A stretch of DNA of 33,466 nt from Caecitellus pseudoparvulus (GCA_965644315.1 CBFFRQ010000151.1:1-33466); one strand, 5' to 3'. Positions 6,056 to 33,466 are shown, counted from the first letter of the stretch. Numbers and translations: made by a program. The notes: generated by a model not told the origin, from the sequence alone.

Positions 6056-6515
6056 CCACTGCCCGCGCCCTACTCAGGCCCAACAGCTCACGCACAATGT
6101 CCAGGTGGCCATTGGCGCATGCGCCTCGGAAGGCGGCCTCAAATCGATCCTCAGGCGCCATGTGCACATTCACTGTCCGCGCCCCAGTGAGAGCCAACAG
6201 CTCACGCACGACGTCTGTGTGGCCATTCTCGCATGCGGCTCGGAAGGCAGCCTCGGGTCCATCTCCATCCGCCGCATGTACATCCACTTCAACGCAGCCT
6301 TCCAGAGCCAGCAACTCACGCACTAGTACCAGGTTTCCTTTGCTGCAGGCAACTTGAAACCGAGATGTTGTGTCTGAACTCGCCAGTGCCTCAGCCAAAG
6401 TGTCAGACTGAGCAGAACTTTGATGCAAGATGTGCCAGAGCTGATCTGCAGCAGCCACTCCACAAGCAGCTTTCCACTGAGTCGTGAACTGTGCCGGGTC
6501 TTCAAAGGTTGCCAT
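6056..6515 (-). pseudogene. Ankyrin-repeat protein, 5' part
   Basis: ATG at 6515. Three ankyrin-like repeats (ACSKGNLVLVRELL, ACENGHTDVVRELL, ACANGHLDIVRELL); similarity stops abruptly at 6056. Confidence 0.85.
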
Positions 6516-9357: not shown

Positions 9358-9937
9358 GAGGCCAAGCCTGCCAGGTACAGCCCGAAGACAGCAGCGTCCT
9401 GCATCGCCTCCGCTGCTCACGCCACTGTCGGCCAGGTCGAGCGAGTGGCCAGCATGGTGCAGCGAGAAGAAGAGCGGTTTACCCAGCGGGGGAAGCGATC
9501 AAGGTAACATGGTCTTAGCCCGCCGAGTGCCAAGCGTGCGCCCCATTGAGAGCTGGAGCAGGGCCACCGGCTCTCCGGCTAGATGAAGGGAGTTTCATCG
9601 ACACACAGGCCTGCCAGGACCACGAGGCTAGCGGCGTGATCTGAGAGACTTGTATAGGATTTTGAAGCTCTATCAAATCATCTGTATCTTGTGAACCTCT
9701 AGGCGGTTCAGAGCCGGTTGGGTGCAGCCAACGGCTGACATATCGCAGGCCTCGTGGATTGTCGTGGTGAAGCAAAGCGAAACGCCACACCCGCAATGTG
9801 CAGCGCTCTCTGGCGGGAGAGGGACAACCCACGGGCACGCTTTGGGCAAGGTGGCTTAGGAGGATTCCATTTGATTTTGTCCAGCACACGAAATCGGCAA
9901 AATCCTATGGAAACGAGGCAAGACCTACCCAGAGAGC

Positions 9938-11330: not shown

Positions 11331-12142
11331 CTCCCAACAAGCTCAGTACCCTCCCTGCTCCAGCGCTGGTGGGAGCCGCTGGATGCCATGACGAGTGCGA
11401 AGAGCACGTATGGATATGTACCTCTTTCCACCCATGCACTGTTGTGCTGCCTGTTGTGTGGCACGAACCAGGAGCTTGCTCTTTCAAGCGCTGCCATTCC
11501 TCGCAGATCCGACGCTGGCCAAGTCAAGGTGGTGTTGGGAAGTTCCTCGACGCAAACCTGAGGAGCGACGTGCTGCGTTTTGGAGGTGTCCACTATGGCC
11601 TTGCTGCGGGTCGCCGCTGGGCTGTGTTGTCACGGGTGTTGCATGAGCCAGCCCAGGGTGTGATATCCACACCAACCTGTCTCTCTCTCACACAGTGCTC
11701 TTGCGATGTCGGAGGGGGGTGCGCAGTATGCAAGGGAAGAGGGGCTGGAACGGAGATTGACGGCACCCTCTGGAACCTAGACACGGCGGGGAGTCTCGCA
11801 GGCCAAGTATGACCGCCAGGCATAGCGTGGTGTGTGCCGGGGGATGGAGCTGGCATCAGCGTTTCGAGCATGAAACGTCGTTTCACAAGCTCCTGGCTCG
11901 GAGGCAGTTTGCGCATTTGCACACTTTTCTCACCAAGAACTACATGCACTTTCTACGTCATAGCAAAACGTAACTAGCTCAACCCTCAAGTGACGCAGGC
12001 AAGCTCAGCCCTGCGCTTCGAAGAGCTGTGCAAGTTCTGCGAAGTGCTGGGGCGCAGGTGTCAGCACAAGCCAACACCGACTCCAAGTTCCCGTCGAGCG
12101 CCGGTGCACCTAACACAACTGGTCTACCATACGTTCTCAAGC

Positions 12143-15100: not shown

Positions 15101-15710
15101 CTCCAACCTGTACGCCCACGCATCAGGAAAGGGAAAACCCTCAGATGTGCCCCCTGGCTTGCGCGACATTGCACAGGTGGCGCTCTCAAAACGGTCACAC
15201 CTCGAGGCTATCAAGGGTGGAAACGTGAGATTGTTGCACACTGGCGGCAGCGAAAACGCGCCCGCATCAGACGCTGGGGATGAAGAGGGCTCTGAGGGGG
15301 GCATGTCTGTTGTGAACTCCTGGTTAGAACTGCTGAAGGCAGACGTGCGGGTTAAGGCAGAGCAAGTATCCGTTGGCGGTGTAAGTGGTGCTAGGCAAGG
15401 AGCTGGCGGCAAGAAGGGCAGCGTTGTTGACAAGTACAGGAAGCTCAGGGTGACGGCAGAGCCAGTGGATGGAGTTAGCAAGCCAGAGTGGCGGGTGCAC
15501 ATGCTGTACGTCACTAACACAGGCCTTGTAGACAACGAGCGGTACTTGAACCAATGCGCGAAGTACCTTGACTCCCCGCTGGTGCATGCGATGGTGGGTA
15601 GCGACTTCGTGCCTGTGCCTGCGCCAACTGCTGAGAAAATCACGGTGTTTCCAGATGTGTTTGACTCTGACTCAAGTGATGCCGGTGAACCAAGTGAACC
15701 CATTGGCTGA
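12143..15710 (+). CDS. Crinkler/RHS-type P-loop NTPase plus restriction-endonuclease-fold protein; exons 12143-12529 and 12609-15710, 1162 aa
   Basis: Walker A LLTGVHGCGKST, Walker B LVVVDEVN, GNVPR motif and a C-terminal PGVDALL...FVEVT nuclease-like motif. A phase-0 intron joins the two ORFs in frame. Confidence 0.75.
12530..12608 (+). other. Spliceosomal intron (79 nt)
   Basis: GTAGGT donor, pyrimidine tract and TGACGCAG acceptor. Removal gives ...LPPELPR|GSFPETA... in frame. Confidence 0.75.
12879..12974 (+). repeat. Coding 33-bp minisatellite, 3 copies (AAAKKRAEEKE, coiled-coil-like)
   Basis: Direct repeats visible in DNA and protein. Confidence 0.9.
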
Positions 15711-15929
15711 AGTGACTGAGGTGTGTAAATGCCTCTCGGCAAGGCTTCCATGTGCCAGACAAAAGACTGCCAAGGAGCGTGGCTTGCATAGTTTTCGCCC
15801 CGCGATATTTCTTGCCAGGTTTGTGGAGGTTTGCTTGGCAGGACGGTGCCTTCCCATATCGAGGCTTGGGCGCCATTGGAGCTCATCAAACAATCAAGTC
15901 GCGAGACACCCACAAGCTGTGAGACGACA

Positions 15930-16310
15930 ATGAACTCGCGAAAAAAATTTCACCCGTGGGACGCTTTGCCTTCTTCAACAGTGCTCTGCAGCGGCAAGCG
16001 CTGCGGTTGTGATTTAGCAACCAACGATTTTGTGCAGCCTGGCGCTGAGAGGGGCAGGAGCAAGAGAATTAGACCCGTAAGCCTGAGCCCTTCTATGTTA
16101 TTTTTGACCAGGAAGTCTCATTCGTGCCGTCACTCAGCGACAGGCAGCCAGGGGGCCGTGCAGTGCGGCAAACCGTGCTGCGGAAATCGGTTGTGTTTGC
16201 CATGCATGCCGGCGTCAATTCTGGAGAAGCTGGCCCAAGGTGGGGGTGGTTTTTGAAGCCAGAGGATTAACACCATAGATACATAGTCTACTTTGAAGTG
16301 TGAAGGCTGA
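15930..16310 (+). pseudogene. Cys-rich (zinc-finger-like) coding fragment
   Basis: CSGKRC...CRH...CGKPCCGNRLCLPC; exon structure unresolved. Confidence 0.25.
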
Positions 16311-16538
16311 AAATCTTCCCTGATGCCGCTGTTGCGTGGGAAGTTCGCCGCTGCCGTGGAGAAGGCTAGCAGGTGTGGCGCTGGCGGCATACTGACCAAG
16401 TTGCAGGCAGGTGAGCATATCCTCATCGCTACCTGCTCATGGCAGGATGTACGCTTTTATTGGGTCTTTCTCCTGCCTATCCTGCCGCCATTGACAAGTG
16501 AGTGCTGTTCGAGAGGTGTTGGTGTTTGGATTTCTTGA

Positions 16539-17492
16539 GTGTGCCTGTGGAGGAAGTGGGAGTGCCTGCACGCCTGCGGGCTTTGTGTGAAGCCATCGAC
16601 TTCACCATGGGCCATGTTCGACATTCACGGCATTGCAACGTCAATGGCTGACGATGAGCACTGCGGCGGCAGCGTTGTGCCACACCTCATCGTGCCGCAC
16701 CCGATGTGGTCTGTGGCCACTCTGGAAGGCACCACTGCCGCCGCCTTCATCCGTACCTCGTCTTGGGATGAGGAGCACGCCTGTTTGCGCCTCGTTACAG
16801 GCAACTCCCGAGGCTCTGTGCGCGTGTGGCAGGTGAATGCCGGCCTGCAAGACATCCAAGAGCTGGGCCACGGCGTGCAGACAGAGGGCGAAGCAGTCAA
16901 GTCTCTGTGCCGTGCTGAGCGGGAGACGTATGAGGCGCGGTCAGCGGCTCTGGTGGGCATTGGCAAGGTCGGTGTCTGCGTGTGGGGCATCTCCAACGAC
17001 CATGTGGAGGGCGACTTCGCTCCTCTGGAAGTGCACGATTCGGCCGCAGATGTTGCAGATTCATGCGAGAGCGACTTGCCGGGGTTCTTTGGGGAGATGA
17101 GCATGCCGCCTGGCGAAGGGTACGAGCCCGTTCCCGTCAGGATGGAGAAGCTGGACATCCCGTTGACGGGTGAAGACGGCGATTGCTTCATGGATGCTCG
17201 AACGCTCGTCCAAAGCACGAAGCGAAATCCCACGGAGGAGGAGCCACCCGTTTTCGTGCAGACTGCATCTAAGTCTATTGTGCCGTGGCGACTGACCCAG
17301 CTGGATGCCGAGCCGATGGGCGCCACGACGGAGTGGCTGAAGTCGGCCAAGTTTCAGACTGCAAAGCTGCTTCCAGGGCGCCCGAACAACTTCACAGCGC
17401 ACTGGCCCCTCGTGGATCCAGATACCGGCGACTACGACACGAAGTACTTGCTCACTGCTGGGCTGGAGATCTATGTATTCCACTCCTTTCCT
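16539..17492 (+). pseudogene. WD40/beta-propeller-like gene truncated at a telomeric tract
   Basis: Open frame with LVTGNSRGSVRVWQV and VCVWGI blade-like motifs. It runs directly into TTAGGG repeats (translated LGLGLG) at 17493. Start uncertain. Confidence 0.55.
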
Positions 17493-17509
17493 TTAGGGTT
17501 AGGGTTAGG
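17493..17509 (+). repeat. Interstitial telomere remnant TTAGGG TTAGGG TTAGG
   Basis: Same repeat and orientation as the terminal array; sits between the truncated gene and the 3' end of element A. Confidence 0.9.
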
Positions 17510-20500
17510 AATCAATGCATTGCAACCTCTTGTTTTCAACCACACTCACTTCACACTTGCTCCTCGAGAGAAGCGGGCTGCGGCGCTCGCTTGCTCAGTA
17601 CACATATCTTGCACAAAGCATGGTGAGTCACCGTGTGAAATAAGCTTGTTCTTTCAGAACATGGTCATTTAATGTTCTTCGTCGTCATTCAGGCGTTCGG
17701 CGCCTGTTGGGCGAGTTGGGCGCGGGTTTCGGCCTTGGCGTGTTGGGGGGCGCCGCGGCGACCCCGCGCACACCTCGCCACCCCGCGACCCAAAACGGCC
17801 CCGCCGCGCGTTACGACACTGGGAATTTCAGAATAACATCTTAGAATGCACTATCAACCCAAAGCAAGCTTTTATCACTCACTTTCTTGCTCCTCTGCTG
17901 CGCCACCTCGCCCGGGAGTGAGGTGGCTCGGCATGGTCCAGGCGGCAGGCGTGGCGGCCGTGTAGCGGGCTCGCCGCGCGAGGTCCGCAGCGGGCTGCCC
18001 GCGTTCCACGCCTGCGCCTTGAAGTTGAGCTTCTACCACGTGATCAAACACGGCCCCACAGTACCGGATGCACGTTTTCAGGACTTGCGTCCATCCGGGA
18101 GGTGCGGCGACCGCCTCGTGGGGCCAGTAGAAACTTTTGCCGTCAGCGGCACCCCCAGAATTCGGGAGCAACTTTTGCCGCAAGGGCCCAGCAAATGCCT
18201 CCAGTGCTTCAGAGGCTTTCACTGGGTCTTGGTCCAGTAGATGGGTCGAGTTTCGGACTGGAACACGCAGCCGTTCCATGTGTGGCGCCGTGAGGGCAGC
18301 ACAAGTTGCGTGATCCCAGTCCGCACACTCGGGTGCTCCCGTGGGCCACTGACCACACAGGGCGAGCCGCTTCAGCAACGCCCGGGTGTTCTGGCATGAG
18401 ATACGTGTTCCAGTGTCCAGTTGACAGCCAGCCTGCACCGCTGTGTGCAGGCTTTCTGGAATGGTGACGTATCTCAGGGGTGGGTGCCGGAGGGCCTCGG
18501 CCGTCGGCCGCCTCGGCACAGCGGTTGACTTTGCCGCTTCGTCACAGTCCTGCATGTTCTGCGCTGCCTCTCGGAAGAACGCTAGACGTTCTAGAGATAC
18601 TGAAGGGCAGTCCAGCAGAATGTGGTCTAAAATGAACTCCGCATCGCGTATTTCGGGGTCCAGACAGAGAGGACATGCGATATACGGTGTCAGGGCAGCA
18701 CCCGGATGCAGGAGCTGCTGTGTCTGCAGCATGAACACCTTCGGCAACGGGCTTCTGTCAGGGTGACAGGCAGTCCAGGCGCTACAGGGAACACTTGGAA
18801 TCGGATGCAGTTCCGCGTGTGTTCGCGCTCGGACGTCCAAATGGTGAGGCCTCGGCGAGAGCGTCGGATTCACTCTTTTGTCGCCTATTTCTCCCCGAGG
18901 CGAGTGGCCCGGGTACTCAGCAGGTAGGAACATGGTCTCCCGGTACATGTCTGTTCTTTGCGTCCGTGCAATGAACATGTACGACTCCAGGAGGTCCAAA
19001 CGCTGCCTCAACGTGAGAGTGGCTGGGAAGTCAACGGACCTGTCAAACCTCGCACAGGCCACAGGAACACTCATTGCGACGAACAACTTCGGGCCGTTCT
19101 GGGCCGTGTTCTTGGGCAGCTTTAAGGCCTTTTGGAGAGATCGCATCTCTTCGTGTAGGGCCGTGGTGTCCCGATTTCCGCTCAAATCGTGCCACCTCGC
19201 GGCCATGTCCAGAACGCCGAACACACCTTCGTGGTACCCCAACAGGCGCAACTCAAGTAGGGGTCTGACCGCCCACGGAGTGCCTGTACCGTAAAAGGTG
19301 TGTTTCGAGGCCGCTACGTCTTCCAAAAGGAGGGCCGAAGGGACCATCTCGTCCGGGACGTCCGCGACCATCGTTCGGCCCTGCCACACGCTCACCATCA
19401 GGATCTTGAAAGCAGGCGAATCCACCACAGCCTGCTTAAGTGTCCGGACTATGAAACCAATGCGACTTCGCATCGTGCGCATGTGTGTCAGAGGAATACC
19501 AGCCGCTGCAAGGACCGCGCCGTGTTGGACGCGCATCGGATGAAGCTGAAATCCGAACACGGATTTGTCCAGAACACTGCCAACGGCATTGTCGCACATG
19601 CGGTTGGGCATGAGCGAGTGTTTGCCAGTGATTGCCAGTGTGTAGTCCGCTGCAGCGACCACTGAGGTCCTCAAAAGGCGGTGCGCTGCCGACGGGGCGA
19701 GCCATTCAGCCGCAGAAATCGCCACAGAAGAATGCCCAGCCATGCTCAGGGTGGTTGCGGCATGTCGACAAGTCGCTTTATGCTGTGTGTAAAGCTTGGC
19801 TTGTAACGGTGTTCCTAAGTACTCGTACTCGGCGACGAGAGGAATCCGCTTTCCGTCGACGGTTAGCGCCTGTGACTCCGCAGCAAGGCGTTTCTTCGAT
19901 CTGACGACAAGCATCTGGACTCGGCCCATGCGATAGGAAAGAAGCGGGGATGATCGCATGATCATGATGGCCGACTTGGAGGCGTTGACTCTGAGCCCAA
20001 GCAGCGCCCCGACCCGCCTGACGATGGTGATCGCACGGATCACGGCGTCCGCGCTGTCTACGACGAGTCCCAGGTCGTCTGCGTACAGCGCGTGGCTGAA
20101 TCGGGGTCCAGTGTGGACTGGGTCCCCCTTTGAATGCAGTAGCTTGACCCCCAGTGTCGGTTTTTCCCCCTCTCCCTCCCCGGGAATGTGGTTCAAGGAC
20201 AGCGCACGGGACACCAGGTCGACCGCGATCTTGAATAGAAGGGGCGAGAGGACGCTCCCTTGCGCTACGCCACTGGTCGCATGGATAGCCTCGGTCATGC
20301 CGTGTTCCGTGTCGATGCAGACGCTGGCGTTCTCGATGAAATCCACGAGGAGTCGCCTGGTGGTGCGGTCCAGCGGCAGGTGGTCCAACAGCACGCGCAG
20401 GGCCCTGTGATCAACGGAGTCGAAAGCCTTTCGAAAGTCGATGAAAACGGCAAAAACGGCCAATGGAGGGCTGTTCTTGGGTCTAATGTCCCGGGAACAC

Positions 20501-22331
20501 GTCGCGGTCGCTGTTCTCAGTGCTGTTCTTGGTCCTTCGAGCATCGCAAAAACGTGCTCGTGGCACCCGCGGCCTCTGGAGAACCCTGCTTGCTGCGGAG
20601 TGATGAGGCCTTGGACGGCTTGTTCCAGCCTGAATGCAAGAACACTGTTCACCAGCTTGCTCAGCGGGCTCCGGCACACGATCAGCCGGTAGGTCGACGC
20701 GACCCCGGGGGTCTGACCCTTCTTTGCGAGCAGTACTCCCTTGCCGTGGTGCAGCTCCCGTGGCAGGAGACCGTCTTCCTTCACCAGGTGCTGTAGCGTC
20801 TCTGCGAGGCATCTCAGAACATCCGGGCCTGCGTAGGCCCAGTGTTCGGCCTTGAGTTCCGACAGACCACTGCTGCGGTGTTTCCGCAGTGACTTGGTCG
20901 CTCTGAGGACCGCCTCAAAGTTGAAGATTTTCGGCTCTTCAGAGGCTCCCGAGTCACTCCCTGCGGAAATTGGAGGCAGCAGACCCTCAAAGTGGGCTGC
21001 ACTGAGTCCGTCCAAGTCGGTACTGGGTGGCTGTGCTATCACAGATCTCATCTGAGAATGCAAGATTTTCACCACCTGGGCCGGCTCGGTCACCGCCTGG
21101 CCGGCCTGCAGCGCGAGGCCAGTTGGCGCCAGGCCTCCGGCTCTTCGACCCAGCGCACGGCAGATGAGTTGATGCGCCGTGAAAGGGTGCTCCTTGGCGA
21201 GCATGTTGATATGCTTCCTTAGCCTGGAGGCGGTCTCCTTCTTAAAATCGGCCTTCGCGCGAGCCACCTCGTTGTGAGCCGCCCTGCAGCGCAGGGTCGA
21301 TTCTCGGAGACTAACTTCTAAACTAGAGATCGCCAGGGCACGCCGCCTTGCAACCGAGTCACCTGAAGGGTGTTCTTCCAGATGGTGTGTTCGGAGTCGT
21401 CTCAACTTGCGCCGGAGTCTCCGGACCTCTGCAACTTTTTGGTTGCGTTTGCGGCGGGCCGGCCGCAGGCCATGGTCGGCCCTGGAACTCCTGCCCCTGG
21501 CGAAGACAGCGCATGCCGCTTTGTGCAGGACTCGGCCGATGTGACCCAAGGAGGGTGGTATGTGCGGTGTTCCGGCCCGTGGCCCCTGGGTGTTCTTGGC
21601 ACTCTGGGCCAGCCTATCGCCAGCATGACTGGCGTACTGGGTGACCCGGGTGGAGGTTTGGAACACACCGGGGTCTTCGAATGGGGCCACCGGCCTGCGA
21701 GTGTTCCGTGTTCGGCCTGGGGGGGCTGTGGCACCGTGCAGCGTGACCGTACAATGCACCAAAGCGTGGTCCGAGAGGAGCAGGTCCTGTGGGGACCTGG
21801 CGTCGCCCGTGCTGAAGGTGGTCACCACTCTTCCGTGTTCCGCGCGTTCGTACACGGGCCTGGACAGGCATATGTGGTCCAGGCACCGTCCGTACTTCAT
21901 GTGGGTCGCGTTTCCTGACCCCGGACTCGGCAAGAGACCGTGCTGGTGGGTCCATCTGTCGAAGGATCCGACGTCGGATGCCGGCTTCTTCGGTGTTCCA
22001 GGACAGGACCACCCCATCCGCTCCCAGAACTGCATCCCCCCTGTTCCGGGATGGCAGTTGAAGTCGCCAAGGAACGCCAGCTGGTGGGTGGGGCCGTAGC
22101 GGCTCGCCAAGAGCTCGAGGCCAGCCCAGACTTCGGCCCGGTCTGGCAGGGCGCCCGTGTCCACCTGTTCCACGTCCATGTCCCGTGTTCCAGTTGAAGG
22201 TGGAACATCGGGACGGTGGTCCACACCTTGTTCAGGCGGGCTAACTCTCGCGTGCTTCCGCGTGATGCTGTGCGGCCGCAGTACCGGCATGTACACGCCT
22301 ACCACCAGCAGCGGCGGTGACACCGCGTCCT
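17510..22331 (-). mobile_element. Element A: 5'-truncated APE-type non-LTR retrotransposon
   Basis: 3' UTR 17510-17874. The ORF breaks off inside the APE domain at ~22335 (in-frame stops upstream, no WNV motif). Confidence 0.9.
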
Positions 22332-22335
22332 TTAG
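17875..22335 (-). CDS. Partial APE endonuclease + reverse transcriptase + CCHC finger (5'-incomplete)
   Basis: GDFN, LDHI and SDH (APE); YRLI, QAGF, IDFRKAFDSV, GVAQGSVLSPLLF and YADD at 20074-20085 (RT); CPLC...HILLDC. Confidence 0.95.
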   Translation of the reverse strand, partial: LKDAVSPPLLVVGVYMPVLRPHSITRKHARVSPPEQGVDHRPDVPPSTGTRDMDVEQVDTGALPDRAEVWAGLELLASRYGPTHQLAFLGDFNCHPGTGGMQFWERMGWSCPGTPKKPASDVGSFDRWTHQHGLLPSPGSGNATHMKYGRCLDHICLSRPVYERAEHGRVVTTFSTGDARSPQDLLLSDHALVHCTVTLHGATAPPGRTRNTRRPVAPFEDPGVFQTSTRVTQYASHAGDRLAQSAKNTQGPRAGTPHIPPSLGHIGRVLHKAACAVFARGRSSRADHGLRPARRKRNQKVAEVRRLRRKLRRLRTHHLEEHPSGDSVARRRALAISSLEVSLRESTLRCRAAHNEVARAKADFKKETASRLRKHINMLAKEHPFTAHQLICRALGRRAGGLAPTGLALQAGQAVTEPAQVVKILHSQMRSVIAQPPSTDLDGLSAAHFEGLLPPISAGSDSGASEEPKIFNFEAVLRATKSLRKHRSSGLSELKAEHWAYAGPDVLRCLAETLQHLVKEDGLLPRELHHGKGVLLAKKGQTPGVASTYRLIVCRSPLSKLVNSVLAFRLEQAVQGLITPQQAGFSRGRGCHEHVFAMLEGPRTALRTATATCSRDIRPKNSPPLAVFAVFIDFRKAFDSVDHRALRVLLDHLPLDRTTRRLLVDFIENASVCIDTEHGMTEAIHATSGVAQGSVLSPLLFKIAVDLVSRALSLNHIPGEGEGEKPTLGVKLLHSKGDPVHTGPRFSHALYADDLGLVVDSADAVIRAITIVRRVGALLGLRVNASKSAIMIMRSSPLLSYRMGRVQMLVVRSKKRLAAESQALTVDGKRIPLVAEYEYLGTPLQAKLYTQHKATCRHAATTLSMAGHSSVAISAAEWLAPSAAHRLLRTSVVAAADYTLAITGKHSLMPNRMCDNAVGSVLDKSVFGFQLHPMRVQHGAVLAAAGIPLTHMRTMRSRIGFIVRTLKQAVVDSPAFKILMVSVWQGRTMVADVPDEMVPSALLLEDVAASKHTFYGTGTPWAVRPLLELRLLGYHEGVFGVLDMAARWHDLSGNRDTTALHEEMRSLQKALKLPKNTAQNGPKLFVAMSVPVACARFDRSVDFPATLTLRQRLDLLESYMFIARTQRTDMYRETMFLPAEYPGHSPRGEIGDKRVNPTLSPRPHHLDVRARTHAELHPIPSVPCSAWTACHPDRSPLPKVFMLQTQQLLHPGAALTPYIACPLCLDPEIRDAEFILDHILLDCPSVSLERLAFFREAAQNMQDCDEAAKSTAVPRRPTAEALRHPPLRYVTIPESLHTAVQAGCQLDTGTRISCQNTRALLKRLALCGQWPTGAPECADWDHATCAALTAPHMERLRVPVRNSTHLLDQDPVKASEALEAFAGPLRQKLLPNSGGAADGKSFYWPHEAVAAPPGWTQVLKTCIRYCGAVFDHVVEAQLQGAGVERGQPAADLARRARYTAATPAAWTMPSHLTPGRGGAAEEQESE

Positions 22336-22950
22336 CTACTCAATGCATTGCAGATTGCCTCCATGCAGGCTACATCATGGTACAGCTTGGGCTTGGACAT
22401 GTGGTGCCACCTGCGCCACAACAGAATGCAGTGACACAGACACCACGACGGCACCGCTTGCACGGCTTTGCGACTAGCACAGACTCGTGTCCGTTGTATA
22501 AGTCGCCGTCTGTCTTGGCGCTTCAGCGCCCGCCCCGGTGGGATGGTCTTGAGGTGTAGGTCCAGGTCTCGGTCCACTCTTGTCTTGTCCGTCCAGTCCA
22601 GTCTCGTCCGTCTCGGTCCGATGTCCAGGGGTGGAGACCCGACTTGCTTGGCTTGGGTGGCGGTGTGGGCTGGAGGATATGGACTCGACACGGACTGGGT
22701 GTTGCTGAGATGCAAGCACACGACCCAGCCCGGCTGTCCCTTCGGCTCAGGTTTGGGGGCGGCCTCACAGATCTTGCTGCAAGTGCCTTCCCCTTCCACT
22801 GAGCCGAGTCCTGATGTGTTGGTATCGATGTTGGGTTGGTGATGGTGAGGTTGGGTTGGACTTTCCAATGTCCGATGTCAGCTATGTGCGTCGGTCGCGA
22901 CACAAAGCTTCAGTCATGTGTGGCACAGGGAGTATGCCCCCACAGGTGAC

Positions 22951-25031
22951 TTACATCAGGCGTCCACCCATCTGCCCGATCGAGATGTGGGGCACATCCT
23001 TGACCTTGGGCAGGCGACCCTCGCCGTCTTCAGGCACCAGCCGCTTGAGGGGGTCCTTGACCTCAGCCTCCAGGGTGGCGGCCTGCTGTCGGGTCATCCG
23101 CCCATGAGGCATGGCCACCCTTGTGCCCTTGCCAGCGATGAGGGTCTGGGGGTGCACGGTGCCGTCGGTGGCCTTGTGAGGCAGGGGGAAGTCATCTCGG
23201 AGAGACTGGAGTGCCCCTCGAAGCCTGTCCCGGAAGGGTGCTGGACTGCCCGCCTCGGGTGTGGTCCAGATCCGGTACAAGACGTTGATGCCTTCGGCTG
23301 CCAGCCGGGTCATGCACTTGTGCAGGGGCAGCTCGTCATGGAGGTCAGGGATGTCGGGGTTCCACAGCACCAGCTTGCCTCGATCATGGTCGACGAGGAT
23401 GAGCTGCAGATGGGCCGTGTTGTCGGTCCACACCTCTCGAAGTGCGAAGGCATACAGCACTCCGTCGAGGTGCCCCTCTTGGTCACCCTCTTCATCAACC
23501 TGGCTGGGGTCGACGCCGGCCTGGCCAAGGTCATCATGCCCGGCTGGGGCACGGTACCCTTGGTTGATGCGGTCGATGAGCAGGTGCAGGCCGGGAAGCA
23601 GGACTGGTGGTGTACCTGGGGCCAGGAAGGTGTCATCCGGCGAGTGCTGGTGCAGCATGTTGCGGAAGACGGCCACCCGTTGCCCGTCTGAGCGGAAGGG
23701 GGAGGGTGGCTTCTGGCCGACGTCCATGATGTCCGAGCTGGACGAGTCACTGACCACCCCCTCCAGCTGCCTGACCATGTGCTTGAAGGCAAGCTGGGCA
23801 GCGTTGATGGTGGCTGCATGCTGGAGTAGGAGGAGGTCCCCAGCCTCGAAGACCCTCTCCCCTGCTGCCGTCTCGAGACAGGCCTGGACACAGGCCCGCC
23901 CCCCACGTTAGAGTACACGTGGGTCGATGACAGCAGGTCGGCCAGAGGGCCAGGCTTGATGGGGTACTCGGCCAGGTGCTCGGGTGTCCGCACACTGTCA
24001 TGAAGAGGCACCACCCTTGTGATCACCTCCCATGCTGCTGCTGCAGACGGCCGATACCGGTGCACCTCGGGGCTTGCCTCGCCCGACGGGGTGGGGGACG
24101 GCCACTTGCGGTCGACGCCCCGCTGCACCCTTGATGAAGGCAACATGGCATGCACCACAGGGGTGGTGACGGTATCTTTGGGTGAGCCTTGGGTGGCAGG
24201 TGGTGAGGTTGGTCGAGGTGCAGGTGGCCGGACGTTCTTGATGAAGACGTCCTCGAAGGTGAGGGATCGTCCGGCTGACTTGCCCTTTCCTCGCTTGCCT
24301 CGACGGGTCTTCTTCTTCTTCGGTGCCTTGTCGAGCTGAGTGTCAGTCCAGGTCGATGGTGTCTTGGTGTCGACAGGTGCATCACCCTCGGAGGGGACGG
24401 ATTGTCTGACACTGGGACGGACGGCTTGGGCTGGCACGGGGCCATGGTCGAAGTGGGACCTAACGAGGCACATGACCTTGGCAACATCACCTGACTGGCA
24501 GGCGATTTCGGTTGCTTCCTTGGTCACTTGGTGGGCCACTTGGATGGCGGTGGGGTGGGCCTTCACCTTCACTTTCGCCTTCGCCGATGCGAACTGCTTG
24601 GTGTTGGTGTAGGCCACGGCGACGAACCCACCTTGGCCGACTCGAATGGCGAAGTCGTCCTCTTGAGCAGCAAGAATGCGAAGTTGACGTGCCACTGTTG
24701 GTGAATCACCCTCACTTCCGAGCGTGACGAGGATGGTTGGCGATCCGGTGGGTCCCTGGCGCAGGGCCGCATTGGCGTTGCCGAATTCCGCACTCAGCCC
24801 TGGGATCAGCCGTTCGGCGGCTTCCCCATAGACCTCGAGCCACATGTCCCGTGCCGAAGATGAACTATCATGATCAGTCTTGGGCAGGGGTCCTCCAAGC
24901 TCGAAGGTGCGTGCGGCACCCCGACGTGGCATGTCAGTGAAGACACCTGTTCTGGGGCCGAGCACTTGCTTGCGCTTCAGGCACCCCTCCACGAAGAGGA
25001 CCCCCAGGACTTGATCCACTTGGGCGTTCAT
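22951..25031 (-). CDS. ORF1-like protein with putative Josephin-like cysteine protease (~690 aa; one frameshift at the C6 run 23899-23904)
   Basis: Colinear with the N-terminal part of element C (QVLGVLF, PRTGV.TDM.RRGAARTF.LGG, KKKKTRRGKR, CVQAC.ETAAGE, PPVLLPGLHLL, HLQLI.V, LVLWNPD, TRQQAA). ATG at 25031, TAA at 22951. Confidence 0.85.
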
Positions 25032-25115
25032 GATGCTTGTCAATGATGCTTTTGATGTCGATCCCAGGTGCATGCCCCGACCGAGGGCGCAAACTGGGAG
25101 CCACGGTGCGATGGT

Positions 25116-25256
25116 GTGCGGAATTCGCACTACCCCGCCCCGGTGCGCACCACCCAACCAGCAAGCACTGTGCAACACCACACTTGGGTGCACGAGCGCC
25201 TGGATTAGGCAATGTTAGCACTTCACAACTTGTGATTAGCTTGACATTTGGAAAGT
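25116..25256 (-). promoter_or_regulatory. Conserved 5'-terminal non-coding block of element B
   Basis: 25168-25256 matches 32788-32876 at 83/89 nt with no gaps. Hairpin GTGCG-GAATT-CGCAC at 25116-25130 is conserved at the same offset in C. Confidence 0.6.
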
Positions 25257-25269
25257 CCTTGCCGGTTAG

Positions 25270-28200
25270 CAACTCACAATGCATTTCACCTCGGCACAGC
25301 TTGGCACCGTACAGCTTGAGCGTCACACGGGCGCCCCACAATGCACCTCTGCACATGTAGGACGCCACAGCGGCTACCGCTTGGCGCGGATTCGCAACAA
25401 ACACAGGCTTGCACCCGTTATATCTGCCGCCACTTGCTAGGGCAGGTCCCTGCCCGCTCCAATTCATCATCTTGGCCCTCCTCCGCTACACTTCATCCCT
25501 TGCTCCGCCAGCGCCAGACACCTGGGGCACACCAGAGCACACCCAGGCATCCGCGCAGTCTTGACAACAGATCATAATCCAAATTCCTCACCCACCTCCT
25601 CTGTGGCCCTCATAGGCCTCTCTGCGCCCTTCATGAGGTGTGTGCTCCGCCTCTGCGCGGGAACTCGGCCGGGTGCGTGGTGCGGAATTCGATCGCGCAC
25701 ACCAGCACCCGTGCGCACACACGCGCCCGCGCCACAGAGCGCATCGCGCGCATCAAGGGGGATACAGAAAGGAAAAGGACCTTCTTCTTCAACCCGTCAC
25801 GCCCTGGTTTCGTGGTGAGTGAGCTTGCTTCATCGTCAGCCGCCATCCGGGCCGCGGCCGTGCAGCACTGCGGCTGCACACGCGCCGCGGCCCGAGGCAC
25901 GCTCCCGCTCACTCCACTGCTACTCGCAGGCTATGTAGTAAGTAAAAGGTAAGGTCTTGGGCATCTGCTTCGGGCTACCGTGGTTATCACCACGCTTCAC
26001 ACAGGTTCATCACGTCAGGACACTCGTGGAGGGTAGACGCGGCCACAAGCGTGGCTGTTCCACTCCCCGCCCGCACGCCTGCGTTCCGCCTTACTCCTCG
26101 CTCTCTTCACAGGAACCATCGGGCCCTTCCCCCTCACCATCAGTGTCTGCATGGGCTGGCTGAGGCCCCATGAAGTGCTGCAGCGTCCTCTGGACCTTGC
26201 CCTCCGTGGACGGCACTTGGCCAGCCTTGGCAGGGAAAAGGTGCGTGCCCTGCGGCGAGTGCGGGGCCTGCGCGTGTGCCGCGTGGCCGCTGACCGCACT
26301 GGCTGCGTGCGGCCAGGCAGCGGCGCCCCGCGCCCATGTACTGCCCACCACAGGTACTCAGCATGCCTCTGGACAGCAAGGTGGTGGGCATCGGTCATAC
26401 GCAACATGTAAGTGACTGTGACCCGCCACGCCTTTGCTGTGAACTCAACCGCGCTGCGCAGGATGTCTTGCCATACAGCTGGGGCACGGACACGGCAAGG
26501 ACCAGCACGGTGGACGAGGTGGGGGTGGGAGAGGACAGCCGCCTCTTTCATAGAGACAAGCTGCTCTTCGTCGGCCAGCCCCCACCGGTGAGGCCACTGC
26601 CCGCAGAGCAGGAGCCTGTGGAGGACCTCGAGGTCCCGCAGGCTTCGCGGCTCTGGGTCGGGGGCACGAAGGAGGGCGTGGCAGATCTTGGGGGGATGGG
26701 CAGGCACTGCACTTGGCCCGCCGCGGACTCGGGCACAGCTGACCTGTTGGCCAGTTCTCTGAACTTGGTCATCGTGTGTTGGCGTGCCATGGTGAGTTCG
26801 TGGTGGGTGCAGTGCAGCAGGATGTGCACGTGCAGCTGTACATCGGTGTTGAGTCCGCAAATCGGACAGCACTCGTACAGAGTGGCACTGTCCCCCCCAT
26901 GAAGAAGCTGTAAGGTCTGGAAGTGATGGACCATCACTCTGGTGGGCCTGTCATCAGGACAGACCCAGAAGAGGGGGTTCACCCCGTGTGGCAGTGGATG
27001 TAGCCACACGAAGTGCTGCGCACCAGGCCCAAGATGATACGGCCTGGGCTTCTGCACTTGGGGGATTCGGCTGTCGGTGGTGTAGTGGGCAGCTGCACTC
27101 GGCACTGCCTGGGCTACATGAAGATACGACGCGAGGACTTGGCGACGCAGGGCCCAGGGGGTGTCTGCCGTGAAGGCCGGGGGTTCGGCCATGGACGACG
27201 TCTCGCTGGCAGCCACCCCAACCACCGCAGACCTGTGGAGGCCCGGGGTGGTCTTAAGTCCGGCAAGGACTTGGGCAAGGGCTGTGGCAGCATGCTCAGA
27301 GCCAGGTGCACATGCAAGCCGAAGCTGTGCAAGGTCTGGCATGCAGCCCATGAGCCAGAGGTCCAAGAGGGCATGCAGTGCCCACGGAGCAGGGACACTG
27401 GCAGCCCGGAGTCGACCTCCATCAGCAATGGTGTCGACGATGAAGGTCGTCGACATCGAAGCAGGCATAAGGTCAAGGGCCTGCGGGATGGTCAGGCACA
27501 GAGCTCGGGCAAGAGGGGTGTCCGAGTGCAGCATCCGGAGAGCCTTGACAAACATCCCAGTCCGCAGTTGCGTGGAGCGGATGTGGGCAGGCAGGACTCC
27601 GCATAGAGCCAGCTTGGCGTAGCTGTGGGGGCGCATGAGTGCACTCTGCGAGCCGACTTGGGTCCTGTCCAAGGCGAGGGCGACGCCGCGGTCAACATCG
27701 CGCAGCGGAAGCAGGGAACTGTTGGCTTGGGTGGACAGCATGTAGTCGGCGGCTGACGTGACAGTGGCATACCCAACCAGGTGCCGCTGCTGCACATCGA
27801 GCCAGGTGGCACTGAGCAGCGCGCCCGCAGTGAACCCGGCTTGGATGCAAGCAAGCCCAGCTTGTTGCAGGGTAAGTGCACGGGTCTTGGCAGGATGTTC
27901 GGACATCGGCACACCCAAGTAGGTGTACTCGGCCACCCGTTGGATGGACTTGGTGCCAACCTTCAGCATGCTGCCCGCTTTGAGGGCAGCCGAGCGCCAC
28001 ACCAACTTCTTCCTTTCACTGACTGGTGTCCGGCTGCCTCGCACGGAGTTGGCAAGGATCATGACCCCGGACTTCGACGGGTTGATGGCAAGGCCAACCC
28101 GGGCAGCGATGGCCTTCACCTCTACGAAGATTCGGTGCAAGGCCGTGGCAGACGTTGCGATGCAGGCCAGGTCGTCTGCATACAGGGTGTGGGTGACATG

Positions 28201-31200
28201 GCCTGCTGGTGTTGGGATGCCCACTCCCTGGATGCCTTGGAGGGGCATCTCGTGGAGCCTTTGCGACAGCACATCTATCGCAACCTTGAAGAGGAGGGGG
28301 GACAGAGCTCCTCCTTGGGGGACACCATTGCTGACAGGAAGGGGGCGACAAAGACCATGGCGCGTGTTGATGGAGACCGTCGCCTTGGACATGTACTCCT
28401 TGATGACGGCCAGGAGTGGCGCAGGGAGGGAGGCAGCCTCAAGGATCTCTGTGATGGCTGCGTGGCTCACAGAGTCGAATGCTCCCCGGAAGTCCACGAA
28501 GAGTACCAGGACTTGCACTGGCGCTGTTGACTGTCGCAGGTGGCCCTTGATCACCTCTTGGAGAGCCAAGATGTGCTCATGCGTGTTGCGGTGTCGAGTG
28601 AAGCCAGCCTGCTCCTTCGACACCCATGTTTGCATCCAGGACTCCAGGCATGCAGCGGCCACTGAGAAGAAGAGCTTCGCAGGAGGGGGGCGGCATACAA
28701 TCAAGCGGTATGTGCGAGGCCGCCCAGCTTCACTCGTCTTCTTGGGGATGAGTGACCCAATGCCTGCATGGTAGTCTGGCGGGCAGGTGCCGTGTTGCAA
28801 CGCTTGGATGACGGCTTGGGAGTAGATGTCTTGGAAGCCTGGCCCAGCATACTTGATGTGCTCTGATTGGAACTTGCCAGAGCCTGGGTGTCGATGCAAG
28901 CTGAGTGATCCCATGAGGACTTTGACTTGCTTCTTGGAGGGAAGCCATGTCACTGGCGGGGTGAAGGACTCTTGGGCTGAGGGAAGGAACCTTGCCAGCC
29001 CGTACTTCAGCGATGTTGGCCTGGGCTTGTTGTGACTCAGGATGCCAGACATCTGCTTGGCAACCTCCTCCTTCACCAGATCAGGGGAGGAGATGAGCAC
29101 TCCCTGCATGGACTTCACGGACCTGATGGGAGCTCGACGGGCTCGACGACCTCGACCTGACAGGCGCTTGATGTGTTGGTGGGCAGTGAAGGGATCCGTG
29201 ACAGCGAGTTCCCTCAAGCGTGCTCGGATCCTGGACAGAGTGACATGTCGCTTCTTCTTCACAAGCCTCGTGCACTTCCGCATTGCATCCTTGCGGCATT
29301 GAAGCGTGGCGTGTAGCTCTTCAGTGGCCATGGAGATTCCCTCTCGGATGGCACGGGCGTGGTCTGGCTGAGGATGCCGACCGGTGGCAAGTGCGAGCTT
29401 CCGGTGCAGCTTGGCAATGGTCTTCCGCAGCTTGGACACGCGTGCAGTCATGGACTTCTTGAGCCCGCTGGCCGCCTTGATGTCCATCTTCAGCTGGGGC
29501 AGAGGGTCACGTGGGGTCTTGGCCTTGCGATGTGTGTCCATAGCCGCAGCTTCGATAGCACCGTTGAGAAAGGATAGGCTCGGGGCGGCGCTGCCTGTCT
29601 GGAGCGCGGTGGCCCGCGAGCTGAGGGATCCTCGAAACATCGCTTGCGCTGCCAGCCCAGCCTCTGTCGCTGAGGTCCACCAGGGTGGCACCGCCTGTAC
29701 ATGGGGGCTCTTGGATGATGTCCACACTCGCTTGGCAGGCTTCACTCGGACTTCTGCTGCAACAAGATGATGGTCACTGAGGACTAGTCGAGCGGCACTC
29801 TTTTTCGTCCCGCTGGAGAACGTTGTTGTGATGTGCAGTGGTCTGCTCAACATACTGTGGAGGTCCTCAGTCATCAGGATGTGGTCCAGAGCCCGACCAT
29901 ACCTGTGCGTTGGCAGGCCACCAAGTCCGGCTGGGATCAGTGGGCCTTGCTCGCAGAGGAGCTGCATCTGCAGGATGTCTTCAGTGGGCTCGGGAATGCC
30001 GGTCCGGTTCTCCCAGTGATCTGCTCCCCACGTGCCTACCCCTTCGTCACCTGGATGAGTGTTCAAGTCACCCATGATGACAATCATGTGGGTGAGGCGG
30101 AGCTGTTGAACAGCAGACTCAAGCTGCCGCCAAACCTCTTGCCGGTACGGAAGCTTCGTGTCCGGATCAGCGACTGGCTTCTTTCGCTGCCAAGAGTGCC
30201 AGTTGGGTACGTACGTGGCTATGATGGCGATGGGTTGTGGGCTTGCAGGGATCGAGCAAGCAATTATGCAGCGACCATCAACGTCGAGGCCCGGGATCAC
30301 TGAGCCATTGAGTCTTCGATCAAGCAGCAAGGCAACCTCACTCCGCCCGACAGGCCGATCAGGCGGGCTTGGGCGGAAGCATTCAAGGCCCATGACTTCC
30401 GTGTCGAGCAGGCCGTGCCCCCCAGGCTCTGTGACACAGAGTGCCAACATGGACGACGCACTGCACACAGACTGGACACAGGTGACGACATCGTGGACAC
30501 ACTGGCCGCAGGAGCCGTGCACATTCCAAGCAGCAAGTGCGAGTGTCATGTGTCTTCCGCGGCCGACAGGGGTATGGGGTGCATCGCTACTGATCTGGTC
30601 GGCGACTTGTACAGATGTTGGGATGAGTGACAGTATGGGGTCAACCGTCTTGGCTCTCTCATCGGCAGCTGCTTGTTGGCGCGTGGTGCGGCCTACAGGG
30701 AGGTACACCCGTGTTGTCTTGCCAGTGATGAGAGTCTTTGGGTAGACAGTCTCGTCCTCAGCTACGAACGGGAGTGGGGGAAAGTCAGACCTGAGGGACA
30801 GCATGGCCAGCCGCACTCTGTCTTTGAAGGGAATCGGCTTGCCACTCAGCGGGGAGGATGAGACACGGTACACAGACTCAATGCCCATCGAGTCGAGTGT
30901 GTTCAGGCAGCCGTCGATTGGAATGTTGGTGCTCTTGAAGGGTTCGTCAGGGTTCCACAGTACAAGTGTGGACTTCTCAGCGTTGACGACAATGAGCTGA
31001 AGGTGGGAGACACCTCCAGTGTCAACCAAGCTGAGAGCAAACGCGAAGTACACCCCAGCAAAGACTTTTGCCTCGGAGGTCATCTCTTTCTCTGCCTTGA
31101 CATCAACCAGGCAGTGTCCAGACACTGTGCCGCCTTCAAGTTCCCGATGGCCCTCGTTGATACGCGTGAGCAAGAGATGAAGACCAGGGAGGAGCACAGG

Positions 31201-32874
31201 TGGACAGGCACTGGTGAGTGCTGCATCATCAGGCGCATGTCGGTACAGGAACGATTGAAAGAGGTCAAGCTTGTCTTGCTCGGTGGTCGGCATGGAAGGT
31301 TCTGTTTCACAGACAGCATGGACCTCCGAGTCTGGTGTGCCAGGGTGACGCGCGCTGCTCTTCTTCAACACAGCACAGAAGGATGTCTGCGCCGCTTGGA
31401 TGGTGGCTGCGTGTTGAAGAAGGACAAGGTCATCGTCATTGAAGAGTGGCTCTCCTGCTGCTGTTTCAAAGCAGGCCTGGACACAGTGTCGTTGGTCCTT
31501 ATTGCGGAACGCGTGCGCAGAGGCGAGGAGTTGCTGCAAGGGGGAACCCAAGTCAAGGTTTGCCTGTCCAAGCCGTGCTGGTCGGCGACTGCAGTCAGCA
31601 AGTTTTAGCAGCGTAGTGGGTGCCGTGTTTGCAGGACTTGCAAGAGGTGGCTGTGCCCCGCTGCCCGATAGTGCCGCAGCTGTCGGGGACACGGGAGGAG
31701 GTCTCTTGCGTGGGCTGGGCGAGTCCCATCTGCTGAAGGTCGGGCGCTTGACTCTGGTGGACGGAAGAGGGACATGTTCAGGGGAAGGAGCAGCTTGGCC
31801 TGACGACTCGGCGGGTGCAGATGGAGGGGAGGGCGCTGTGGGGCGAGTAGTCACGACGCCCTCCTTGAACAGTTCAGCAAAGCGCCGAGGAGGAGAGCTC
31901 TTTGTCGATGGCTTGCGTTTGCCCCTCCGTGTCTTCTTCTTCTTGGGACCGCCTTCAGCAAGGGGCTTTGGCAGTGTGCTTGGCAGCTTGTCGACAGAGG
32001 CGTCATCTTCTGGAGAGACGGAGTGTCCGACAGGCTTTGGAGCACGCTTGGCGATGGAGTGAGTGTTGGTGACATGGGCATGGACAAGCTTCAAGATCTT
32101 GGACACATCCCCACTCTCACAGGCAATGTTGGTTGCTGCCTCAGAGATCTTTTGAGCAACCTTCACTACAGAGGGAGGGGCGATCACGCTGACCCTGGCG
32201 CGCTCTGACGTGAACTGCCGCGTGTTGGAGTACACCACGCCCACAGAGCCGCCCCCTTCAACATGATGATGAAGTCTTCTCGCACAGCAGCAGCAACGCG
32301 CAGGGACTTGGCAATGGCGGGGCCTTCACCGTCACTCGGCAGCGTGACAAGGAGAATGGTCTGCCCTGGTGCGGATTGTTTCAGCGCGGAATTAGCGCGC
32401 ACCATCACAGGAGCAGCTCCAGGAAACTCGGCCTCCAGCTCATCTCCGAAGATGCCAAGCCACTTGCGGACGAAAAATGATGCATCTTGGCCATCCGTGC
32501 AGTCAATGTCCATGCCACCGAGCTGGAAAGTCCGGGCTGCCCCTCGGCGTGACATGTCAGTCAGCACGCCTGTTCGTGGCCGCCCTGACACACGCTGCTC
32601 CAGGCACTTGTCCGCGAAGAGCACGCCGAGGACTTGGCTGGCCTTGGATGACATGATGATGAAGCAATGGTTTCGGGCAAGCAGTGGTGCAGCGTCCAGC
32701 CGGAGCCGCACTTAGCACTGCGTGGGGAGCGTGGCGTGCGGAAATCGCACTGCTGCTCACCCGCGCACCCAATGCAATGCACTAGCGCTGTGCAACACCA
32801 CACTTGGGTGCACGAGCGCCTGGATTAGGCATTGTTAGCAATGCACAACCTATGATTAGGTTGACATTTGGAAA
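25270..32874 (-). mobile_element. Element C: apparently full-length autonomous APE-RT non-LTR retrotransposon directly capped by the telomere
   Basis: 5' UTR ~220 nt, one long ORF and 3' UTR ~750 nt; both ends homologous to element B. Confidence 0.92.
26015..32654 (-). CDS. Single polyprotein (~2200 aa): ORF1-like region, putative Cys protease, APE, RT, CCHC; frameshifts at 32252-32256 and 26690-26695
   Basis: ATG at 32654. APE starts at 30549 (WNV, CVTE, GDLN, LDHI, SDH); RT VDFRGAFDSV, GVPQGGALSPLLF and YADD at 28171-28182; CPIC...HILLHC. The post-frameshift LHRLLLCGQWP matches LKRLALCGQWP of element A. The stop may instead be 26091 if a further slip exists near 26328. Confidence 0.9.
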
Positions 32875-32876
32875 GT
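32736..32876 (-). promoter_or_regulatory. Conserved 5'-terminal non-coding block of element C
   Basis: Counterpart of 25116-25256 at a constant 7620-bp offset. Confidence 0.6.
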
Positions 32877-33466
32877 TAGGGTTAGGGTTAGGGTTAGGGT
32901 TAGGGTTAGGGTTAGGGTTAGGGTTAGGGTTAGGGTTAGGGTTAGGGTTAGGGTTAGGGTTAGGGTTAGGGTTAGGGTTAGGGTTAGGGTTAGGGTTAGG
33001 GTTAGGGTTAGGGTTAGGGTTAGGGTTAGGGTTAGGGTTAGGGTTAGGGTTAGGGTTAGGGTTAGGGTTAGGGTTAGGGTTAGGGTTAGGGTTAGGGTTA
33101 GGGTTAGGGTTAGGGTTAGGGTTAGGGTTAGGGTTAGGGTTAGGGTTAGGGTTAGGGTTAGGGTTAGGGTTAGGGTTAGGGTTAGGGTTAGGGTTAGGGT
33201 TAGGGTTAGGGTTAGGGTTAGGGTTAGGGTTAGGGTTAGGGTTAGGGTTAGGGTTAGGGTTAGGGTTAGGGTTAGGGTTAGGGTTAGGGTTAGGGTTAGG
33301 GTTAGGGTTAGGGTTAGGGTTAGGGTTAGGGTTAGGGTTAGGGTTAGGGTTAGGGTTAGGGTTAGGGTTAGGGTTAGGGTTAGGGTTAGGGTTAGGGTTA
33401 GGGTTAGGGTTAGGGTTAGGGTTAGGGTTAGGGTTAGGGTTAGGGTTAGGGTTAGGGTTAGGGTTA
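32875..33466 (+). repeat. Telomere, (TTAGGG)n, about 98 repeats
   Basis: Uninterrupted TTAGGG array to the end of the window, G-strand running 5'->3' outward. Confidence 0.99.

Follow-up and report, generated by a model that had tools for sequence, protein, structure and literature searches.

The window analysed here is the entire 33.5-kb contig G000:C151 (33,466 nt) of a 30.6-Mb, 215-contig assembly of Caecitellus pseudoparvulus (GC about 60%). Its outer part is a chain of three retroelements, called A, B and C below, which lie head to tail on the minus strand (17505-32875) with their 5' ends pointing outward, between a short telomere stub and the terminal telomere. A and C are long interspersed nuclear elements (LINEs) with domains for an APE-type endonuclease and a reverse transcriptase (RT); B has neither. 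The layout is:

17493-17504, plus strand: telomere stub, (TTAGGG)2, between a subtelomeric repeat unit and the 3' end of A
17505-22330, minus strand: element A, an autonomous LINE from an older family, truncated at its 5' end, with APE and RT domains
22331: filler between A and B, a single T
22332-25255, minus strand: element B, full-length, non-autonomous, 2.9 kb, with no endonuclease or RT
25256-25263: filler of 8 nt between the 5' end of B and the 3' end of C
25264-32875, minus strand: element C, a full-length autonomous LINE, 7.6 kb, with APE and RT
32876-33466, plus strand: terminal telomere, (TTAGGG)98.7 with 100% matches, reaching the contig end

The joints between A, B and C contain no host DNA. 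Every long open reading frame (ORF) between the stub and the terminal telomere is on the minus strand. Telomeric 12-mers occur 99 times in the window, compared with 0.02 expected by chance, and the only telomere-like sequence besides the terminal tract is (TTAGGG)2 plus TTAGG at 17493-17509, where the TTAGG (17505-17509) is the 3' end of A itself, directly following the stub. No long terminal repeats (LTRs; sought as head-to-tail similarity inside an element) and no poly(A) were found in A, B or C. A reading made earlier from the sequence alone (the sequence-only reading) had described this same order of stub, three head-to-tail elements without intervening host DNA and TTAGGG array, and only its boundaries needed correction, by a few bases. 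It had also described A as a divergent 5'-truncated RT element, B as an ORF1-only element and C as its full-length RT-bearing relative, with which the domains and protein alignments given below agree. In every case the telomeric C-strand is the sense strand, which means that first-strand cDNA would continue the G-strand outward, again as had been proposed.

Distribution at chromosome ends and telomerase

A search of the whole assembly, a check that the sequence-only reading had suggested, finds A, B and C at the ends of contigs, with 5' ends facing outward; the arrays vary from one end to another. There are at least 13 full-length copies of C at 98-100% identity, plus 5'-truncated copies, and at least 46 full copies of B at about 100% identity. 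All copies of B and C are at contig ends, 5' end outward: minus-strand matches lie within about 20 kb of the contig start and plus-strand matches at high coordinates, where telomere repeats follow the element wherever this was tested. B and C thus form polar head-to-tail arrays restricted to chromosome ends.

Ten contig ends were inspected individually, a biased sample picked for having element matches. In all ten, either the contig ends in a TTAGGG tract of 0.4-5.3 kb or it begins inside the array; a full-length B or C lies directly inside the tract, and older or truncated elements lie deeper, in the same orientation. An unbiased list was made from each stop of a run of three or more telomere repeats in the whole assembly. 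It gives about 54 inner tract edges, 39 of which are full or near-full element 5' ends (32 exact full-length ends joined to TTAGGG, four full-length ends with an irregular first repeat, and three ends short by 9 nt). About ten more are recognisably truncated copies of A, B, C, D or F (D and F being relatives of C), at about five no element was identified, and a further six tract stops are variant repeats inside an array. A plain telomere on unique host DNA was recognised at none of the roughly 54 edges. An rbcL search gave no match, and Pelagomonas was rejected as the source because its 6 chromosomes are too few for the roughly 50 contig ends that bear elements here.

The genome also encodes telomerase. 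The presence of TERT, for which the sequence-only reading had advised a search, is indicated by a 1389-aa open frame on contig C77 (G000:C77:24238-27642, L001), with no stops across the region examined, a Telomerase_RBD match of 79 bits and TERT-like language-model features. Nearly every assembled TTAGGG tract stands on a one-way chain of LINEs, and so retroelements and telomerase appear to build the ends together, comparably to Drosophila or the rice-blast fungus though with unrelated elements.

Proteins and RNA ends of the elements

The coding and RNA features of B and C are:

22951-25031, minus strand: coding region of B, ATG at 25031, in two frames here (-1 shift in the G-run 23893-23906)
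about 22975-23892, minus strand: papain/Josephin-like peptidase of B (predicted fold)
25166-25255, minus strand: 5' terminus of B, 90 nt, nearly invariant and common to B, C, D and F
22332-22545, minus strand: 3' structured RNA module of B, ending in the palindrome CAATGCATTG and then ...GCTAA
26548-32654, minus strand: coding region of C, ATG at 32654, split here (-1 shift in the G-run 32247-32261)
30562-31620, minus strand: predicted papain/Josephin-like peptidase domain of C, Cys motif at 31471-31485 and WNPD at 30946-30957
29755-30546, minus strand: APE-type endonuclease of C, with every catalytic motif
27910-28749, minus strand: RT domain of C, YADD at 28171-28182
32786-32875, minus strand: 5' terminus of C, the conserved 90 nt, adjoining the telomere
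25264-25469, minus strand: 3' structured RNA module of C, ending in ...GCTAACC

The 1898-aa ORF of C matches RVT_1 (E 2e-29) and Exo_endo_phos. The APE domain lies N-terminal to the RT and has all of the expected motifs (WNVHG, VTE, YVPN, GDLN, LDHI and SDH), while the RT has only distant matches in the PDB, to the R2 and L1 RTs. A Pfam search of C and P0001 found only APE and RT, with no RNase H and no restriction-like endonuclease. The autonomous members, which are C, D, F and the older A, have a polyprotein in the order N-domain, basic linker, Josephin-like cysteine peptidase, APE, RT and CCHC; the C-terminal CCHC-like motif and YADD are present in both A and C. These elements are APE-type LINEs, with a YxDD RT and an APE with its catalytic residues. 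They lack LTRs and many copies are 5'-truncated, but the 3' end, where LINEs have poly(A) or a simple repeat, has no poly(A) and instead a single unit complementary to the telomere.

Elsewhere in the assembly B has a single ORF of 694 aa (for example L004:5442-7523). Its ORFs match no known domain in Pfam, neither RVT_1 nor Exo_endo_phos. The B protein aligns to the N-terminal 570 aa or so of C in three successive blocks, of 45%, 35% and 43% identity, and the end of its ORF coincides exactly with the start of the C endonuclease. B is no deletion derivative of C.

The frame breaks of B and C in the window are both -1 and both in G-runs, and siblings with one more base keep the frame. The coding region is uninterrupted, in one frame, in the C copy on contig C32 and in a metagenome relative described below. 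Because sibling copies and this relative read through, the splits are taken to be copy-specific lesions or homopolymer miscalls. Programmed -1 frameshifting was considered and is judged less likely than differences in homopolymer length, for the same reason.

The sequence-only reading did not recognise the protein in the ORF1 position, and sequence searches say little more. Exhaustive comparison of the N-terminal 700 aa with 1.84 billion representative proteins gave one weak match (E 3e-6 over 65 aa); there was no Pfam match at E up to 1, Josephin included, and none in a sequence-profile search of the PDB. Structure prediction was more informative. The C-terminal 350 aa of this N-terminal protein gave a model with a predicted local distance difference test score (pLDDT) of 78 and a predicted template modelling score of 0.81. 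The best Foldseek match is the ataxin-3 Josephin domain (E 3.9e-3), which is also the best match in VIA-align (166 of 181 residues aligned, with a Z of 7.4, middling by the calibration of that tool), and all 50 of the top 50 VIA rows are papain-like. The model of the whole B protein is poor (pLDDT 47), yet gives the same papain-like picture; no fold was assigned from the models to the N-terminal 200 aa.

In the predicted fold an invariant Cys opens a helix, and an invariant His and Asn/Asp are on the strands that follow. Four families show no variation at C381, H541, N558 or D560, and six show none at the His, Asn and Asp. We conclude with moderate confidence, because the Z value is middling, that this is a Josephin-like peptidase of papain fold (clan CA). 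A clan CE (Ulp-like) reading of an H...D...C motif was rejected, the Cys being upstream at the start of a helix and the fold being papain-like. The predicted peptidase could free the N-terminal protein from the endonuclease and RT in C, or could act as a deubiquitinase.

At the RNA level, the last 200 nt or so of B, C, an older C lineage, D and F have a common multi-helix fold. An alignment of six sequences has 59 pairs, of which 19 covary, with 94.8% of cells paired, and none of 500 shuffles reaches the observed value. With 12 distinct sequences, in an alignment fitted to the covariance model and thereby favouring the structure, 28 of the 59 pairs covary, compared with at most nine in slid controls. 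Searched with the covariance model, 241 kb yielded 29 copies, every one on the sense strand; some are from families outside the seed, and Rfam has no family for the module. One divergent copy (L018:9262-9465, on C31; 46% GC, 141 bits) may mark a further, older family.

The 90-nt 5' terminus contains two CCTAATC motifs and one GCTAAC. Its sequence identity is about 95% even where the proteins of two families share only 43-52%. Because B carries both termini of the autonomous elements, we infer that it would be copied in trans by the RT of C. The elements thus add two new families, one of structured RNA and one of proteins without sequence relatives.

Element A has these features:

17875-22323, minus strand: open frame of 1482 aa, matching RVT_1 and Exo_endo_phos
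21763-21777, minus strand: SDH motif in the C-terminal half of the APE domain
20074-20085, minus strand: RT active site YADD
18664-18675, minus strand: CCHC-like motif

A retains only the C-terminal half of the APE because it is 5'-truncated. Its RT matches RVT_1 with E 1e-24, and its protein is 30% identical to that of C over 1342 aa. The 3' end is the complement of TTAGGAATCAATGCATTG and does not match the 3' covariance model of the B/C-type elements. Copies in the assembly are 89-98% identical, with about 13 long copies at 94-98% and many 3' fragments; they sit deeper within arrays than B and C, and those outside the window follow 0 to 4 repeats. A is an older autonomous family, distinct from the others, whose 3' untranslated region (UTR) differs. 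Old A-like 3' fragments (77-93% identity) are also found far from contig ends, at C30:253725-254341, C89:60639-73816, C78:433670 and C18:155119, and could be relics of ancient ends or fusions.

Junctions, related strains and flanking sequence

Read on the G-strand, B starts TTAGCTACTCAATGCATTG, C starts GGTTAGCAACTCACAATGCATT and A starts TTAGGAA(GT)TCAATGCATTG, and element 3' ends in general appear as TTAGC..., GGTTAGC... or TTAGGAA.... The RNAs, as read from the DNA, would therefore end in ...CUAA(CC), which is one telomeric C-strand unit. Ahead of it stands a palindrome, which is CAATGCATTG in A and B and AATGCATT in C.

Every junction opens with TTAG following a G. On the proximal side of the 3' ends there are mostly 0-3 repeats, or else the preceding element's 5' end, whole or truncated; the exceptions are tracts of about 24, 60 and 413 bp. 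Genome-wide there are 23 tight head-to-tail joints: 11 without a repeat, five with exactly one, two with the 8-nt filler, and the remainder with 2-3 repeats, often opening with an irregular T-rich unit. At three junctions there are abortive pieces of the B 3' end, 11-17 nt long, followed by telomere repeats or another element, and one such piece lies inside the terminal telomere on C10. The first repeat after a full-length 5' end is often irregular and is specific to the end concerned (TTAGGG, TTTAGG, TTTGGG, TTAGGGG or TTTTTGGG). This speaks for de novo addition having taken place separately at each end, and against one templated leader.

Some junctions are common to different ends, namely one on C18 and C30 and one on the window and C32. 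In the latter the B|C junction recurs with its filler, the same C-filler-B joint having different proximal flanks, and it fits retrotransposition of a read-through C+B transcript. The 10-nt string TCCTTGCCGG (25256-25265, the filler plus the next GG) is found at two different junctions, the second being on C32 (L020/L021), where an old, truncated copy of C meets irregular telomere repeats. A further family, E, is present on C5 (L003:1432-1837) only as tandem 3' fragments of about 115-200 nt between telomere-like units, which look like repeated abortive additions.

The only close protein relative outside the genome (52% identity) is a single 2159-aa ORF on a 7.7-kb ENA metagenome contig (L022). 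On this contig CCCTAA repeats are joined to the same 5' terminus, and at the other end the palindrome and CTAA are joined to CCCTAA repeats. Its family is F, which is also present in this genome. Parts of the window are carried by twenty public DNA-type runs from 10 studies, comprising marine metagenomes and several named organisms. In three public runs, from other organisms or metagenomes, B is about 97% identical and its neighbours differ; its 5' end continues into telomere repeats in two of the three, and one has a B-TAGGG-B joint. The comparison between strains that the sequence-only reading had called for thus finds the same element with different junctions. A extends past 22330 in all three runs, and so the A|B junction appears private to this genome. 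In the JGI metagenomes there was no exact match to the 5' end, and the RT relatives were distant (25-36% identity). The near-identical copies, the intact ORFs and the junctions differing between strains make the elements look recently active.

The flank of the array (9500-17484) is a subtelomeric repeat unit of about 8 kb, found at 78-94% identity and in the same orientation at 12 or more other contig ends. Many of its copies stop at one base, about 17484, immediately before the stub. It encodes a 1058-aa ORF (12534-15710) with weak matches to AAA_22 and STAND NTPases, within which there is an in-frame 33-bp tandem repeat of 2.6 copies (12882-12967). Near the contig start is a 2.7-kb tandem duplication (675-3372 and 3366-6061, 94% identity), each copy of which holds a 531-bp internal tandem repeat that includes the CAATGCATTG palindrome. 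The duplication resembles none of the three elements, and its CAATGCATTG palindromes, at 2670-5889, were accordingly rejected as element traces.

Mechanism and comparison with known systems

We put at about 80% the probability that these elements form a superfamily of LINEs specialised for telomeres in a telomerase-positive marine eukaryote, where they build polar arrays under a TTAGGG cap. In the mechanism we propose, the G-strand 3'-OH of a very short or uncapped chromosome end would prime reverse transcription, the RT would occasionally jump from one element RNA to the next, and telomerase would re-cap the conserved 5' terminus. Repetition of the cycle would give polar arrays at most or all ends, with 15.4 kb added at this one. 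We consider end priming rather likelier than insertion mediated by the endonuclease, because proximal tracts nearly always have 0-3 repeats, compared with hundreds to thousands of bp in terminal tracts, and because some joints have no repeat at all and abortive starts are found at junctions.

Several findings weigh against this proposal. The APE endonuclease of C is complete. The metagenome relative is flanked on either side by long repeat tracts, which agrees with insertion into duplex repeats. Interstitial tracts in Magnaporthe are unstable from three repeats upward (PMC7367193), so that the short tracts here could be survivors and not an insertion signature. Junctions shared between ends imply that recombination spreads arrays too, the evidence for mobilisation of B in trans consists of the shared termini, and assembly is difficult where near-identical repeats of 3-8 kb stand at about 50 ends. 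Finally, no Logan contig spans this array.

The first three of these points speak for the strongest alternative, a serious though less probable one, in which integration is site-specific and mediated by the endonuclease, as in TRAS/SART or MoTeR. The APE would nick the G-strand of duplex telomere repeats just ahead of TTAG, or else where the 5' end of a resident element meets the telomere, and long interstitial tracts would later break and be lost. That every junction opens with TTAG after a G agrees with this, as does the finding that 11 of the 23 tight joints are exactly at the conserved 5' end, a possible target whose use would explain its conservation. However, there are repeat-free junctions on truncated elements (the A|B joint in the window, a C copy on C19, and D|D joints); near-identical and very recent B copies already have proximal tracts of 0-14 bp, next to terminal tracts of 0.4-5.3 kb; and one 413-bp and one 60-bp interstitial tract survive.

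Recombination between ends, by break-induced replication or a process like alternative lengthening of telomeres, might instead spread and homogenise the arrays, with retrotransposition rare or extinct. The identical composite junctions on separate contigs (C18/C30, and the window/C32 with the same filler), the subtelomeric unit common to at least 12 ends and the near-complete identity of the B copies (about 100%) all suggest it. As the chief explanation it is nevertheless improbable: there are many distinct 3' junctions, with varying flanks, repeat numbers and truncation points, as well as abortive 3'-end pieces; ORFs and catalytic motifs are kept intact; covariation shows selection on the RNA structure; and for the window/C32 joint, whose flanks differ, retrotransposition of a read-through C+B transcript fits at least as well. 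That telomere-adjacent repeats were wrongly concatenated in assembly, as the short contig (33 kb), its near-identical repeats, the lack of a spanning Logan contig and possible homopolymer errors at the G-run frameshifts might suggest, is hardly credible when the same architecture is found at about 50 contig ends and on an independent short-read metagenome contig, and junction reads from other organisms or metagenomes show both the B 5' end with telomere and B-TAGGG-B.

The sequence-only reading had called this an independently evolved end-extension system. Its claim of a separate origin stands, in that the N-terminal protein has no relatives and the RT is only distantly related to R2 and L1; priming at the terminus is less secure, because the intact APE leaves room for insertion of the TRAS or MoTeR kind. 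A bolder version of end priming, which we regard as speculative and doubtful, is that this is an independently evolved, host-integrated system of end maintenance beside telomerase. RNA 3' ends resembling the telomerase template would be copied onto bare G-strand ends after telomere loss, the 5' terminus, with its three TTAGG-like motifs and G-rich end, would seed telomerase or capping proteins, and the excess Josephin-like protein made by B would target or protect the ribonucleoprotein. If true, this would make the organism a living transitional form between telomeres based on telomerase and telomeres based on retrotransposons.

A small number of lineages are known to have telomere-specialised retrotransposons. 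Their coexistence with telomerase, or their replacement of it, has been studied mainly in Drosophila, which has already lost telomerase. Here both systems occur at almost every assembled end of a marine eukaryote with a small genome. It would allow tests of whether short or lost telomeres recruit retroelements, of the mobilisation of a non-autonomous partner through a shared 3' RNA structure, and of the role of a peptidase in the 'Gag' position of a LINE.

The HeT-A, TART and TAHRE elements of Drosophila also form polar head-to-tail arrays at ends, where cDNA extends the end outward. The Gag-only HeT-A needs the RT of a relative, the autonomous members retain an APE, and read-through or co-transcription of neighbouring elements is likely in both. 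However, flies lack telomerase and telomere repeats, whereas here there are TERT and perfect TTAGGG caps. The fly elements are of the Jockey clade, with a zinc-knuckle Gag and poly(A) at the junctions; here there are no A-runs at junctions, a CUAA(CC) end, a Josephin-like peptidase in place of the knuckle Gag, and a single polyprotein ORF. The analogy to the three-part Drosophila system drawn in the sequence-only reading holds for the logic of the array and is loose otherwise, A being a separate older autonomous family with its own 3' UTR.

TRAS1 and SART1 of Bombyx, which belong to the R1 clade and are also among the closest analogues, are likewise LINEs of APE type, restricted to the telomeric repeats of a host that has telomerase. 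The sense strand of TRAS is the C-strand, in the same orientation as here, and the Bombyx RT recognises a 3' UTR structure. They differ in having two ORFs, a CCHC Gag (no knuckle ORF1 was found here) and poly(A), and in forming arrays that are not strictly terminal. A sequence-specific endonuclease inserts them at a defined nucleotide of long TTAGG arrays; the junctions here also have a fixed start, TTAG after a G, but the proximal tracts are mostly 0-3 repeats and some junctions have none. To our knowledge they have no non-autonomous protein-coding partner.

Gladyshev and Arkhipova reportedly proposed in 2007 that endonuclease-deficient Penelope-like elements add onto free G-overhangs. Such elements are restricted to chromosome termini (bioRxiv 10.1101/2021.04.23.441226). 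Athena and Coprina, like the present elements, have RNA 3' ends complementary to the telomere, 3' ends toward the centromere and telomere repeats on their 5' ends; they have a Penelope/TERT-like RT and no endonuclease, in contrast to the LINE RT and intact APE found here. In domain content there is a likeness to Dualen/RandI, which has a cysteine peptidase, APE, RT and CCHC in a single giant ORF, the peptidase being Josephin-like in Chlamydomonas Dualen (bioRxiv 10.1101/2021.04.23.441226) and of family C48, upstream of the APE, in cryptophyte Dualen (PMC5029228). Dualen adds an RNase H and a restriction-like endonuclease, neither of which is found here, and is not telomeric.

A telomerase-positive host with a pair of autonomous and non-autonomous elements is already known in Magnaporthe oryzae, with MoTeR1 and MoTeR2 (PMC7367193). 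There too the telomeres are TTAGGG, the autonomous element has a shorter partner with both termini in common, the 5' ends are nearest the chromosome end in head-to-tail arrays with half to a few repeats between, and telomere repeats cap truncated copies (PMC7367193). The differences are that MoTeR1 has a restriction-like endonuclease and an RT of CRE/SLACS type, whereas here the endonuclease is APE-type; that MoTeR 5' ends have long variant repeats, TTCGGG(TTTGGG)n, where these elements have a unique conserved 90-nt end; that MoTeR2 has no obvious coding function, whereas B keeps a conserved 694-aa protein with a predicted peptidase domain; and that MoTeRs are at some telomeres of some strains, compared with nearly all assembled tracts here.

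No prior description of these elements was found in the searchable literature, a search that did not extend to Repbase and Dfam; a paper on Cafeteria makes no mention of telomeric LINEs. They are closest to MoTeR1/2 in organisation, and they resemble HeT-A/TART in logic and the endonuclease-deficient Penelope-like elements in their telomere-complementary 3' end. Each of these three has a defining feature that they lack, and they are therefore an independent lineage of a known kind.

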